From the NCBI RefSeq assembly GCF_006345805.1, contig NC_043013.1, forward strand, positions 46,004,001 to 46,068,000: a stretch of DNA of 64,000 nucleotides, given 5' to 3'. The notes below the pieces were generated by a model that worked only from the letters and a program-made list of their open reading frames with translations, was not told the origin of the DNA and did no database searches. This stretch comes from Octopus sinensis (taxonomy: Eukaryota). A program made the translations under genes and the position numbers. Position 1 is the first letter of the stretch. Every line of letters begins with the position of its first letter. Positions 34,204-40,922 of the stretch are shown piece after piece.

Positions 34204-34388
34204 CTAGCAGTTCATTGATTCACTCTTGGTAATATGAACTGATCCACCAACTTGTTTGCCAGCCTCGTCAACACAATAGCATGCACTTCCTGTACATTGG
34301 ATTTTGTTGTAGTTACCGTTGGGTTCACAGCGGAACAGTTTGCCAATCAAGCCAGTCTTTCCATATGCGAACTTATGGCGGGCACAGT
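34204..34388 (-). CDS. Coding exon 5: complete second thyroglobulin type-1 domain and stop
   Basis: ctttcag|AC TGT... gives CARHKFAYGKTGLIGKLFRCEPNGNYNKIQCTGSACYCVDEAGKQVGGSVHITKSESMNC*. Confidence 0.93.
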
Positions 34389-37300
34389 CTGAAAGAAAGC
34401 ATAAAGAAAGTTTTAGAGAAAGTCAGTGAATCAGTATTTATCTATCATCTCAACTTATTGGGGTAAATACAAAAGCCTAGTAAACTATCAACTCAACCAC
34501 CGACACTCTCATCACCTGTGGATGATAAAAATCCACCAACTTCATGAAGGGGTCACAACAGGACATTCTTCAGCTTAGAGCAATGAACTACATGTCATGG
34601 CACCTATTACAGCCATGTGGACTGAGCAAGTGGTAACTGTTTGTGCCAACAGTTGACTTTGACTTTTACAACTGCTACTGTCGGATGGTGGTGGTGGTGG
34701 TGGTGGTGGTGGTGGTGGTGGTGTGGTGGTGGTGGTGGTGGTGGTGGTGGCGGTGGTGGTGGCGGTGGTGGTGGCGGTGGTGGTGGCAGCAGCAGTGGTG
34801 AAGGAATTACTTGTGTCTGGTTTTCTAAAAACACTGATGTCACAGTTCAGTGACCTGGCTATGGTACATTTCCTATTGTTTTCTCACAAAACAGCTGTAA
34901 TTATCTTGTTACTCTCCTTAGACAAGATACTCAACTCCACTTACAGCCACTAGATAAACGAGGCACACCATCATGTTAAAACAGCCAAAGTTTGAGCCAA
35001 CCAGAGAGTTTCTATGCTGTCACTCCAACTGCTAGAAATAACAGCTAAATCCTTCTTAAATCACATCCTGCCATCTTAGAAAGACACAGTAATCCCCAGG
35101 ATACAAACAGACAGGATGGTCATTGATAGCGTGTCTTTGTTAAAGAATAACAGCAAATGAGTTTCTTTTGCAAGATTTTGTATGCTTAAGGAACTAAATT
35201 AACTTTATGTTAGTCGTTATGGAAAATATCAGGAATAAAAAAAGGGACATAGCTAGAATATTTCAGATGACTTTATCAGGGGATACAAAATATTTTTCAG
35301 AATCTCTTCCCTCTGTTAGTGCTAGTCTTCAAAATATACAAATATCTTCTGAGAGACCAAAAAAGCTGCCAGATCCAGGTACAATGTACTTTTGCGAAAC
35401 TATCTCATAATTTCTCGATATAATTACGTGTATCTGTTATATTTTTAATGAATAAAGGCAGCTGCCATGTTTTTTTTAGACTGGAATCGTCTCTTTAAAA
35501 CGACTGCCTTGAAGGCAATGCTAGATGAATTCATTTAACTTGTAGAGAATTATAACTTACTGCAATTCATTCCTTGGATATTATGAATGGCAGATTGGAA
35601 TCCTGGGATATGCGTACCATCTGTGTGTGCACAGTAACACCTATGAAATAAAAAAGACATTAAAAAAAGACATTTTTCAGCTGCTTTAAAATCAGTTTTT
35701 TTCTTAATATATATAATCACATCACGCTTAATATAAAACGAAATATGAATCATATAAGTTTCTTCGATTTCAAATGGCACAGTGGATATATGTTCCCCGA
35801 TTCTAAGAAATCAGTACGGAACAGGTCTTCATACTTTGATTTGAGAAAAATGCTCCCAGAAACTCATTTGAAACATAATTTCTTTTGCATTATCTAGATT
35901 CTCTTCTTCGTTATTTTAAAGAAAGACTTTTCCAAAATGTTGGTTTCACATCATAGAATCTGGAAAAAGTGCTTATGCCCCAACGTATGAATTAATAGAT
36001 TTAGTTAATGTGAATATATATATATTTATTCTAGCAGCAATGAATATGTTGCCAACAGCTTAGAAGACTTTTCATGAAATTAGATATAAAATTAATGAAC
36101 CACGTGCTGCGCAGTGATTTCTATGATTATCTACGTTCGTTTATTTTCAAGCCAGTAGCTTATTTGTAATGAAATGATATCACTATGGTAATAATATCTT
36201 ACACTGATCCATGACACTGGACAGCAGAGAAAGTTCCATCAGTTTCACATCGAGGAATAAATGCTCCAAGCAAATTCTTGCCCTCAGTCTCCGATTTCAG
36301 TTGTGTACAAGTTTTTGTAGCGTAATCCAATGGTTCTAAAATGAAGAGAAACAGTAAATTAGAATGGAAACAACTACGCCAGGCTGGTGGATAGAAAATA
36401 ACTAAATTTGATCTTTCCTCACAAAGACGGAAGAACCAATGTGTCTCTACAGTTTGTACAGTTACTAAGTAATGACAAACCAGTCAGGTCAAAAACGAGA
36501 GCCTTTAGTCAATGGCTGCCCAGTCAGTGAGAAATAGCAGCCAAATATCATTCCAATCACACAGTGCTCCCTTCTCAATGAACAGACACAAGGCCCAATG
36601 TAGTTTTAGAAACGTTATGTTTAAAAGGCCTCTTTAATCGTAGGTGTTGTAAACTCTTTAATCGTAGGCGTCGTAGACTCTTTAATCGTAGGTGTCGTAG
36701 ACTAAGACTAACTTGTGTTTTAAGCAACAACAACAACAGCCAGTTTATTTGCTGGATAATTTAGGTTCAGAGGAGAAAGAAGAGCTGCGCTGATTACCTT
36801 ATCACATGCTCATCATGCCTAGTACATCACTAGCGTGAAGGGGTGGGTAAACGAAGAATAAACCATACGTCATTGATTGCCTGAAACTGGAGGCCTTGAG
36901 CAAATGTTTGTAGCAGGTTGGACTCGACTAAAAACACATAAGGATCAAGTGGTGTTCCTTGAAGAGGCACAAATCACCTGAATGATTTCTCTATAGAACA
37001 TTGAAACCATAATGATACAATATTGCGATCGCAAAGATTCTACAGAATTGAGATTTCAAGTATACTGCAATGCTGAAGGCTCAACGGTAGCACAGGACTT
37101 TACAGCCATACAAAGATACTGGAATCACAATTTCGCCTCTATATTGAGCCCACATGTGCACAGCGATATTAGGATCACTATGATTCCATAATACAAGAAA
37201 TAAATGGAATAATTTATAATATATTATATAATAATATAATAGGTCTTCAATCATCCACAGTTACGAAACACAACATGTGTGTTAGCACATGAAATGTTAA

Positions 37301-39878: not shown

Positions 39879-39916
<38 letters not shown>

Positions 39917-40922
39917 TAATAGGAATAATGTATCGCAACGGCATACGGTATGTCGTTGAAATAGTTCTCTGTGGAAATGTATGACAAATTTATGAAGTTA
40001 ATATAAAAGCCACAAAAGCCATGAAAGTCTCATGTGGCGCTGGTACTTAAAACTGACAAGCCATGTTATATATCTGATTGGGCTTGAAGAATGTATATTA
40101 ATTTTTATCACCCTCAACTCAGACTGACATCTTGGGAACACCACATTATATCAGATTAACATGGAGTAATTCCATCCTCAGACCTGACTATCATGTAGTG
40201 AATATATTATTAGATCACATTGACAGTTGTTTATCCCAAGTTTGATTTCAGCTTTTCTGAATGCTTATCTTACTGAATGCTCCTGCAATGTCTATCATAC
40301 TTTTTCTTTTTTTTTTTTTTACTTGTTTCAGTCATTTGACTGCGGCCATGCTGGAGCACCGCCTTTAATCGAGCAACTCGACCCCGGGACTTATTCTTTT
40401 GTAAGCCCAGTACTTATTCTATCGGTCTCTTTTGCCGAACCGCTAAGTAACGGGGACATAAACACACCAGCATCGGTTGTCAAGCAATGCTAGGAGGACA
40501 AACACAGACAAAAACACGCATATATATATATATATATACATATATACGACGGGCTTCTTTCAGTTTCCGTCTACCAAATCCACTCACAAAGCATTGGTCG
40601 CCCCGAGGTCTATAGTAGAAGACACTTGCCCAAGGTGCCACGCTGTGGGACTGAACCCGCAACCATGTGGTTGGTAAACAAGCTACTTACCACACAGCCA
40701 CTCCTGCGCCTATACTTTCCTCTTTCCAATAAATTCATGGGTAAAAATCAACTTACTCAAATATTTTATGCACTCATCACAACATGAACAAAATGTTTTT
40801 CCAAGTTCACCATCTACACAGTTTTCGACTGCTGGGCAGTTTACATTTTTGCAGGCGTCTGGTGGGCAGACGATAGCACTGGCTGCTACAACGCTCAGGG
40901 CAATAAGGAAGATGTACTTCAT
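34204..40922 (-). CDS. Five-coding-exon gene for a 221-aa secreted protein: signal peptide + IGFBP-N/FPI-1-like 12-Cys domain + two thyroglobulin type-1 domains (thyropin-like)
   Basis: Join 40922-40757, 38541-38440, 36335-36203, 35640-35561, 34388-34204 = 666 nt. All introns are GT-AG with matching phases (1,1,2,1) and there is no internal stop. 24 Cys. Motifs CSCCDEC, QCHGSVCYCA and QCTGSACYCV. Confidence 0.93.
34686..34790. repeat. (GGT)n intronic microsatellite
   Basis: Seen directly in the sequence. Confidence 0.95.
35561..35640 (-). CDS. Coding exon 4: second half of the first TY domain
   Basis: tttcatag|G TGT TAC... CYCAHTDGTHIPGFQSAIHNIQGMNC, then A|gtaagt. Confidence 0.92.
36203..36335 (-). 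CDS. Coding exon 3: linker and first half of the first TY domain
   Basis: cattttag|AA CCA... PLDYATKTCTQLKSETEGKNLLGAFIPRCETDGTFSAVQCHGS, then GT|gtaaga. Confidence 0.92.
38440..38541 (-). CDS. Coding exon 2: second half of the IGFBP-N-like domain
   Basis: acttcag|AG GAA... EGDRCIPEGMFGIPVASKCGLNLVCSRRSGTCI, then A|gtaagt. Confidence 0.9.
38608..38932 (+). mobile_element. 3' fragment of the R4/Dong LINE with a fold-back 5' end, inside (AAT)n
   Basis: 38687-38932 matches the 3' end of the 47721-50984 element. 38608-38683 is the inverted copy of 38701-38778. Confidence 0.85.
39015..39215 (-). mobile_element. SINE family B
   Basis: Reverse-complement match. Confidence 0.8.
39348..39851 (+). 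mobile_element. Non-coding repeat family E inside (AAT)n
   Basis: Reverse complement of 63279-63835 and 51051-51385. Ends ctctctcactc(aat)n. Confidence 0.8.
40315..40712 (-). mobile_element. SINE family A, intronic, starting about 45 nt after the coding exon 1 donor
   Basis: Full reverse-complement match. Confidence 0.9.
40757..40922 (-). CDS. Coding exon 1: signal peptide and first half of the IGFBP-N-like domain
   Basis: MKYIFLIALSVVAASAIVCPPDACKNVNCPAVENCVDGELGKTFCSCCDECIKYL, then A|gtaagt. An acceptor tttcag lies 17 nt upstream of the ATG. Confidence 0.93.

Follow-up and report, generated by a model that had tools for sequence, protein, structure and literature searches.

What kind of protein is encoded by the gene on the minus strand at positions 34204–40922 of a 64,000-nucleotide stretch of the Octopus sinensis genome (NCBI RefSeq assembly GCF_006345805.1, contig NC_043013.1, forward-strand positions 46,004,001 to 46,068,000; this whole stretch is referred to here as the window), and does its product bind hormones in the manner of the vertebrate IGFBPs or do something else? 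An earlier note on this DNA had reconstructed a protein composed of a signal peptide, an N-terminal domain (N-domain) with 12 cysteines and a CxCCxxC motif, and two tandem thyroglobulin type-1 (TY) domains, and our Pfam searches and AlphaFold2 (AF2) models bear this architecture out. We argue that the protein belongs to an ancient family found in molluscs, a nemertean and amphioxus, and that it is most likely, although at somewhat less than an even chance, a secreted compound ("multi-headed") protease inhibitor in which thyropin-type TY heads would be combined with an amfpi-1-like head.

The Five-Exon Gene

Searching the window with the protein of the earlier note (tblastn) returned five collinear minus-strand pieces at 95–98% apparent identity, with mismatches confined to split codons, and the spliced coding sequence of 666 nt translates into a 221-residue protein that is, letter for letter, the one reconstructed previously. 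All four introns are of the GT..AG type, with donors GTAAGT, GTAAGT, GTAAGA and GTAAGT (introns 1–4), acceptors CAG, TAG, TAG and CAG following pyrimidine tracts, and phases 1, 1, 2 and 1. The agreement is far beyond chance, and the reconstruction is confirmed; what does not hold is the description of the gene as "hidden", since the exact model is present in RefSeq as XP_029646879.1 ("nidogen-2-like [Octopus sinensis]"), with 100% identity of the protein. This is a real, ordinary and already annotated five-exon gene that carries a misleading automatic name.

Coding exon 1 (40757–40922, 166 nt, with the ATG at 40922–40920) encodes the signal peptide (approximately residues 1–16, MKYIFLIALSVVAASA) and the first eight N-domain cysteines, through CSCCDECIKYL, and ends in a phase-1 split codon at a GTAAGT donor. 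The putative cleavage site of the signal peptide was placed by reading the sequence; AF2 gives a helix at residues 2–15. Coding exon 2 (38440–38541, 102 nt, acceptor CAG, phase-1 donor GTAAGT) supplies Cys9–Cys12 of the N-domain together with a family-specific hydrophobic loop, which reads MFGIP in octopus and LLGVP in the family consensus. Coding exon 3 (36203–36335, 133 nt, phase-2 donor GTAAGA) encodes a 10-residue link and the first half of TY1 (C99...QCHGSV), and coding exon 4 (35561–35640, 80 nt, phase-1 donor GTAAGT) its second half (CYCAH...MNC160), while the entire TY2 (C162...C221) is encoded by coding exon 5 (34204–34388, 185 nt including the stop codon TAG at 34204–34206). On the same strand, a hexamer resembling a polyadenylation signal (AATAAA, 34135–34140) lies 64 nt past the stop, and a possible core promoter element (TATATA, 41009–41014) lies 92 nt upstream of the ATG; both are weak, being consensus matches only. 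Within intron 1, some 45 copies of TAA form a (TAA)n array (39215–39348) that reaches the pyrimidine/AT-rich tract before exon 2 and yields a spurious 121-residue open reading frame on the plus strand (39120–39485).

The window is collinear with O. vulgaris OX597830.1 at ~97% DNA identity, and the O. vulgaris orthologue (CAI9734988.1, "hypothetical predicted protein") is 98% identical, of equal length and built from the same five exons. The two coding sequences differ at 10 of 666 nt, in five synonymous and four non-synonymous codons, and every cysteine is retained. In O. vulgaris, an 80% identical paralogue lies ~91 kb away in head-to-head orientation, and the paralogue is not in the window; its accession is XP_029646721.1. 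The O. bimaculoides orthologue is annotated as fragments only, namely a 70-residue model in which exon 1 is read through into intron 1 and a 63-residue model that covers exon 5 (P0219 and P0220). Transcript support is indirect, from intronless contigs of ~1–1.2 kb of other species that encode full-length relatives (P0224, P0004 and P0005).

Tandem TY Domains Related to p41 and Saxiphilin

The mature protein comprises ~205 residues (~22 kDa, isoelectric point ~7.8) with 24 cysteines and without an N-glycosylation sequon. Pfam Thyroglobulin_1 (PF00086) matches it over two stretches with 75.7 bits and an E-value of 1.9e-21, against a cut-off of 20.6. Both stretches carry the QC and CYC motifs and the cysteines of the six-cysteine type-1A form (C99, C119, C130, C135, C137 and C160 in TY1; C162, C181, C192, C197, C199 and C221 in TY2), separated by a single residue (C160-N-C162). 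Among proteins of solved structure, the nearest in sequence are the TY repeats of thyroglobulin, the TY pair of saxiphilin (E 4.8e-13) and p41, a fragment of the invariant chain (E 8.4e-6), the last of which has been crystallised bound to cathepsin L; further matches are to EpCAM/Trop2 and, weakly, to the IGFBP-1 C-domain.

The full-length AF2 model, a predicted rather than solved structure built from the O. vulgaris orthologue (98% identity) and 25 relatives, has a predicted local distance difference test score (pLDDT) of 88.3, with the TY blocks at ~86–96. In Foldseek it retrieves saxiphilin and thyroglobulin at E ~1e-7, and p41 (1icf_I) superimposes with a template-modelling (TM) score of 0.69 at 1.8 Å, whereas the superposition of the IGFBP-1 C-domain is poorer (TM 0.43–0.61 for chains of 2dsq and 1zt3); weaker matches of the full-length model are SIBD-1, IGFBP-3 and AmFPI-1. 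By Pfam score, cysteine pattern and predicted fold, the two are TY type-1 domains.

An N-Domain Closer to AmFPI-1 than to IGFBPs

The N-domain spans residues 17–92 and contains 12 cysteines, its CxCCxxC motif reading CSCCDEC in octopus and CGCCxxC in relatives. The earlier note had likened it to both the N-domains of IGFBPs and a moth fungal protease inhibitor, and at the level of the family both resemblances are recovered. The Pfam IGFBP model (PF00219) matches 22 of the 25 relatives at a best E-value of 4.7e-5, although below threshold, and one IGFBP match among the profile-search representatives described below scores 21.7 bits, under a cut-off of 28; Pfam amfpi-1 (PF12190) matches 20 of the 25 at a best E-value of 1.9e-7, and is listed as a precomputed annotation for P0008, P0019 and P0021. 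Against the PDB, the sole match of the family profile is AmFPI-1 (3bt4, E 2e-4), with Cys1–Cys11 in register, and no IGFBP is found among its HMMER matches at E ≤ 10. The octopus copy itself, however, is matched by neither Pfam model: for IGFBP this applies to the full-length protein at E ≤ 1 and to the N-domain alone at E ≤ 10, and for amfpi-1 to the N-domain at E ≤ 10.

The balance between the two resemblances is seen more clearly in a search of 1.84 billion representative sequences with the N-domain profile, which gave 323 matches at E ≤ 1e-3, mostly stand-alone secreted proteins of 90–140 residues from ticks, snails and amphioxus. Among the best 124 of these 323 representatives, 55 carry Pfam amfpi-1 and 15 Pfam IGFBP; a TY domain is present in 23, and Kazal or Ig domains in none of the 124. 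The AF2 model of the N-domain alone has a pLDDT of 72.7, and its top two Foldseek matches among 350,000 chains are SIBD-1 (3zxb; E 0.037, probability 0.91, TM 0.45–0.49) and AmFPI-1 (E 0.14, probability 0.82, TM 0.44–0.48), both of them weak, followed by the N-domains of IGFBP-4 and HtrA1 at E ~2. Matches of this model to knottin-type toxins (E 1.5–9) are not significant, and we dismissed them as half-domain chance matches.

We also used hhalign to compare the family with human IGFBP-3, -4 and -5, whose N-domain sequences were verified against the PDB, and obtained a probability of 70% (E 4e-5) with Cys3–Cys11 aligned. Relative to these three proteins, the family has a 7-residue insertion between Cys9 and Cys10, which corresponds to the conserved LLGVP loop, and a much shorter loop between Cys11 and Cys12 (Cys81–Cys88 in octopus), of 6 residues (SRRSGT in octopus, and 6 family-wide) as opposed to 19 in IGFBP-3/4/5. 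In the latter, this loop holds the sequences RPLQALL, KPLHTLM and KPLHALL, that is, the R/KPLxxLL segment between the last two N-domain cysteines that forms the primary IGF-binding site (PMC5241279, PMC9010856). By this loop comparison, the segment is absent from both the octopus N-domain and the family. Furthermore, the linker that follows (Cys88–Cys99) is only ten residues long, so that there is no L-domain, and two TY domains follow in place of one. We conclude that "IGFBP-N-like" is probably right as a superfamily-level description and "amfpi-1-like" the closer one, and that the protein does not belong to the IGFBP family proper, as it lacks the binding loop that is one of the defining features of that family.

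An Ancient Family with Conserved Exon Structure

Full-length relatives consist of the N-domain and two TY domains (~220–240 residues) or, in some cases, three (~340–365 residues). They are found in cephalopods (Octopus, Argonauta and cephalopod-like transcripts), gastropods (Haliotis, Pomacea, Littorina, Patella, Lottia and Gigantopelta), bivalves (Ruditapes, Mercenaria, Ostrea, Mya, Mizuhopecten, Dreissena, Sinanodonta and Solemya), a chiton (Liolophura), a nemertean (Lineus longissimus) and amphioxus (Branchiostoma). All 24 cysteines are conserved in relatives from three phyla, and the 12 of the N-domain are invariant or nearly so across the aligned relatives. The four intron positions and their phases are identical in octopus, Lineus and Branchiostoma, and the gene therefore predates the protostome–deuterostome split.

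The amphioxus member of the family (P0010) is instructive with regard to the IGFBPs. Amphioxus also possesses a canonical IGFBP, which carries SPFRELL at the site of the binding motif (PMC9010856), and P0010 lacks this sequence there; since both proteins occur in the same animal, the family is a separate lineage and not the IGFBP orthologue. We considered whether the "Phe70" of the published amphioxus IGFBP might be F88 of P0010, and rejected this on the same ground, namely that SPFRELL is present in the former (PMC9010856) and missing from P0010. In Branchiostoma lanceolatum (CM068858.1), the next gene downstream of the family member encodes a 394-residue protein with WAP, Kunitz and NTR domains, which is a type of protease inhibitor with several domains; the proximity of the two genes may be fortuitous or may reflect related functions.

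Two departures from the common architecture were observed. In bivalve-type members (P0004, P0024, P0026 and P0028), TY1 has lost one cysteine pair, with QC changed to QF or QY and CYC to AYC or AFC, while TY2 keeps all six cysteines, which suggests functional divergence of the first TY head. In Argonauta P0006 and in Haliotis P0012, P0043 and P0044, a signal peptide or alternative first exon is joined directly to TY1–TY2, and the N-domain is missing; the TY pair and the N-domain can therefore be used independently of each other.

Molluscs contain, in addition, a second family ("family B"; P0047, P0052, P0055, P0058, P0059 and P0062), characterised by a CGCTDxC motif and by precomputed Pfam IGFBP annotation together with one to three TY domains, and in one member by two IB domains. 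In hhalign comparisons, family B matches the octopus-type family with 99.2% probability (E 1e-19) and the IGFBPs with 91.8%. On these profile alignments, family B bridges the two, and would be the better candidate for a protostome relative of the IGFBPs. The earlier note had named Kazal plus Ig as the usual partners of the domain in invertebrates; this is not the only pattern, as these Pfam-positive IGFBP–TY proteins of molluscs demonstrate.

What Does the Protein Do?

We now turn to function. The gene model, the secretory-type N-terminus, the domain composition, the fold and the conservation across phyla are what the analysis shows, whereas all steps of an inhibitory mechanism, the target proteases and the tissue are what we infer. 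As a compound inhibitor, the product would be a secreted protein of ~22 kDa with 12 predicted disulfides, folded into three compact modules. Its TY domains would act as thyropins, wedging into the cleft at the active site of cysteine cathepsins of the papain type, and might also act on one other protease class, as in equistatin. The N-domain would contribute one more binding head, comparable to the proteins of moth haemolymph by which fungal or trypsin-like serine proteases are inhibited. The likely role of such a protein would be to control endogenous or foreign proteases in saliva-type secretions or body fluid.

We favour this reading because the TY domains resemble inhibitory thyropins, namely p41 and the saxiphilin pair, more than they resemble the C-domains of IGFBPs, and because the tandem is packed like that of equistatin, which is quoted as a multi-TY inhibitor (PMC7693380). 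The family nearest to the N-domain, in turn, includes proven inhibitors of serine proteases, with AmFPI-1 and Galleria cationic protein 8 (CP8)/ISPI-1 inhibiting fungal proteases and trypsin (PMC9273619, PMC3278429), and the absence of the IGF-binding motif removes the main alternative mechanism for this domain. A further argument comes from the divergence between the octopus paralogues, which is concentrated in the N-domain inter-cysteine loops while every cysteine is kept: the loops have a non-synonymous divergence (dN) of 0.19 and a ratio to synonymous divergence (dN/dS) of 0.93, compared to a dN/dS of 0.46 for TY1, values which, it must be said, rest on few substitutions. Substitution concentrated in loops with the cysteines kept is common in the reactive loops of inhibitors. 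Finally, a family member with a signal peptide has been reported in the proteome of the protease-rich posterior salivary gland of O. vulgaris. This is a 227-residue TY protein (TRINITY_DN12299, 24.557 kDa), 42.5% identical to a "saxiphilin-like" family member of Pomacea, which its authors class as a thyroglobulin-like cysteine-protease inhibitor and compare with equistatin, and for which the proteomic signal is small, at 2 peptides and 10% coverage (PMC7693380).

We note, however, that a number of points weigh against the inhibitor reading. The octopus N-domain matches no Pfam family at E ≤ 10, and its fold matches are weak (TM 0.44–0.49 and E 0.04–0.14, from a model with a pLDDT of 72.7). The presence of a TY domain is no predictor of inhibition, and inhibitory activity is not known for those of the IGFBPs, nidogen or thyroglobulin. 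Of the characterised amfpi-1 members, Manduca CP8 failed to inhibit any of seven proteases, and Galleria CP8 has an additional role as an opsonin (PMC9273619). The salivary-gland protein could not be equated with the octopus gene, given that the computed masses of the gene product extended by 6 residues (24.30–24.34 kDa) and of the paralogue (24.51 kDa) both fail to fit 24.557 kDa, and that no tryptic peptide or N-terminus of the octopus protein was found in the supplementary files searched. In addition, a family that has retained its exon structure from the bilaterian ancestor onwards might just as well serve in signalling or in the matrix.

The first alternative to be weighed is that the protein is a binder of insulin-like peptides (ILPs), a protostome and cephalochordate counterpart of the IGFBPs in which the IB-like N-domain and a TY domain would clamp the peptide and regulate its availability. 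The order of the modules is indeed that of IGFBP1–6, in which a 12-cysteine CxCCxxC N-domain precedes TY, and this reading also draws on the in-register alignment with the N-domains of IGFBP-3/4/5, on the sub-threshold Pfam IGFBP matches of most relatives, on the link to the IGFBPs through the Pfam-positive family B and on SIBD-1 as the top Foldseek match of the N-domain model. In UniProt, moreover, the O. bimaculoides exon-1 fragment is labelled "IGFBP N-terminal domain-containing protein", and perlustrin, a mollusc protein with a single IB domain, is quoted as having been reported to bind vertebrate IGF (PMC8398477). We nevertheless consider this reading unlikely for the octopus protein, which has neither the R/KPLxxLL segment, its Cys11–Cys12 loop having 6 residues as opposed to 19, nor the L-domain, and in whose family two or three TY domains stand where the IGFBPs have one; the coexistence in amphioxus of P0010 with a canonical IGFBP and the greater proximity of the N-domain to stand-alone amfpi-1-type domains point in the same direction.

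That the protein serves in binding or recognition in body fluid or matrix without being an inhibitor, be it as an opsonin, as a pattern-recognition protein like lepidopteran CP8 or in association with matrix or biomineral, is in our estimation distinctly unlikely. Such a role would be in keeping with the activities of Galleria CP8, a multiligand opsonin with antimicrobial activity, and of Manduca CP8, which stimulates phenoloxidase activation without inhibiting proteases (PMC9273619), with the wide occurrence of stand-alone copies of the N-domain as secreted proteins in ticks, snails and amphioxus, with the presence of IB-type domains in mollusc shell matrices (PMC3374290, PMC8398477), and with the deep conservation and fixed exon structure of the family. 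Against it, octopuses have kept two copies of the gene yet have no external shell, the paper on the Lottia shell proteome does not name the Lottia member (LOTGIDRAFT_238761) in its main text, and TY tandems are not known as recognition modules.

It is highly improbable that the protein is a genuine toxin of venom or saliva, one whose direct targets in the prey would be ion channels or the like instead of proteases. Although a family member has been reported in the posterior salivary gland proteome (PMC7693380), distant relatives bear names such as "cystine knot toxin" and "ctenitoxin-like" and the N-domain model shows a weak partial resemblance to knottin peptides (E > 1), those names are automatic transfers, the proteomic signal is small, and orthologues of the same structure occur in non-venomous filter feeders and grazers (bivalves, limpets and amphioxus).

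We therefore retain the compound protease inhibitor as our preferred, if tentative, reading, and with respect to octopus biology this would make the protein a candidate regulator of the protease-rich salivary secretion. What is new here is modest, namely the recognition, from sequence comparison, that mollusc, nemertean and amphioxus proteins named "nidogen-2-like", "saxiphilin-like" or "thyroglobulin-like" form one ancient family with an N-module of the IB/amfpi-1 superfamily; standard annotation overlooks the N-domain and gives the proteins these names, and a description of the family was not found in our literature searches (thyropins in molluscs, saxiphilin-like, and IGFBP with fungal protease inhibitor). 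A review of the IGF system describes uro- and cephalochordates as the only invertebrates with IGFBP genes (PMC9010856), and another review gives Kazal/Ig modules, or the IB domain alone, as the composition of invertebrate IGFBP-like proteins (PMC7866140); an IB–TY architecture outside the chordates runs counter to these usual statements. This opens the question of whether the original function of IB–TY proteins was protease inhibition or hormone binding, for which the family offers comparative endocrinology and protease-inhibitor research a defined and easily expressed 22-kDa target. One could imagine, although we doubt it, that the octopus-type family and its mollusc sister, family B, testify to a fusion of IB and TY before the protostome–deuterostome split, that the chordate IGFBPs are one surviving branch of an older IB–TY superfamily, and that the protostome branches are either the missing extracellular ILP binders, with the LLGVP loop as a different contact site, or the unknown substrates of invertebrate pappalysins.

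Surroundings in the Window

A (TTA)n microsatellite of 3.65 kb (51385–55035) comprises ~1,228 copies with 85% matches, the GC content falls to 5.5% in the 52–54 kb bin, and the alignment to O. vulgaris breaks across this array. Tetranucleotide arrays are found at 955–1393 ((ATAC)n), 13740–14161 ((TATC)n) and 44467–45216 ((ATGT)n). Two long open reading frames on the minus strand (47979–50571 and 21114–22394) encode RVT_1 (E 2.6e-25) and zf-RVT domains, and are remnants of retrotransposons of the long interspersed nuclear element type that flank the gene region, while a third at 3712–4353 (minus strand) encodes a Pif1 helicase 2B domain (E 1.7e-15) and is probably a fragment of a Helitron-type transposon. 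Short interspersed repeats of ~200–430 bp occur at 8585–9019, 11318–11749, 13144–13378, 15303–15695, 18546–18956 (a 180-bp unit twice in tandem) and 23233–23677; they recur many times in two O. vulgaris loci at 82–95% identity, and look like short interspersed nuclear elements.

Comparison with Known Systems

Of the characterised proteins, those that the TY part of the octopus protein most resembles are equistatin from Actinia equina and other multi-TY thyropins (MEROPS I31), the saxiphilin pair and p41, which have in common with it a secreted, tight tandem of six-cysteine TY domains with QC and C[WY]C motifs, and in the case of the saxiphilin pair and p41 also similarity in sequence and fold. 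None of equistatin, the saxiphilin pair and p41, however, has the N-terminal 12-cysteine IB/amfpi-1-like domain, and relative to equistatin-type thyropins the octopus protein has two TY domains rather than three, and CYCA/CYCV instead of CWCV.

The IGFBPs of vertebrates and amphioxus, which consist of IB, L-domain and one TY, share with the octopus protein the order of modules and a size of ~220–300 residues, with a probable remote homology of the N-domain, and differ from it in each of the features discussed above, that is, in the R/KPLxxLL loop, the L-domain, the number of TY domains and the Pfam IGFBP match, which the octopus protein does not reach. In the octopus gene, an intron splits the N-domain, which in IGFBP genes is contained entirely in exon 1.

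For the N-domain, the closest comparison is AmFPI-1/lepidopteran CP8 (3bt4), which is the best sequence match of the N-domain family and likewise has 12 cysteines; the alignment, in register over Cys1–Cys11, takes in the CxCCxxC motif and, from Cys9 to Cys10, a G-x-x-P loop. At ~9–10 kDa, AmFPI-1 stands alone, whereas the octopus domain is fused to two TY domains, has diverged too far to match the Pfam amfpi-1 model, and matches the fold of AmFPI-1 only moderately (TM 0.44–0.48). SIBD-1 of the spider Cupiennius salei (3zxb), a protein with a single IGFBP domain and an unsettled function, provides the top fold match of the N-domain (E 0.04), but comprises that domain alone. Finally, family B, exemplified by the "IGFBP2" of Argopecten (P0047) and by Liolophura P0062, has an N-domain that is clearly homologous to that of the octopus-type family, with the same IVCxPxxC start and FG/LLGVP loop and followed by one to three TY domains, and differs in having CGCTDxC in place of CGCCxxC, one cysteine pair fewer, a longer Cys11–Cys12 loop and another type of TY domain; by profile comparison, it is closer to the vertebrate IGFBPs than the octopus-type family is (91.8% vs 70%).

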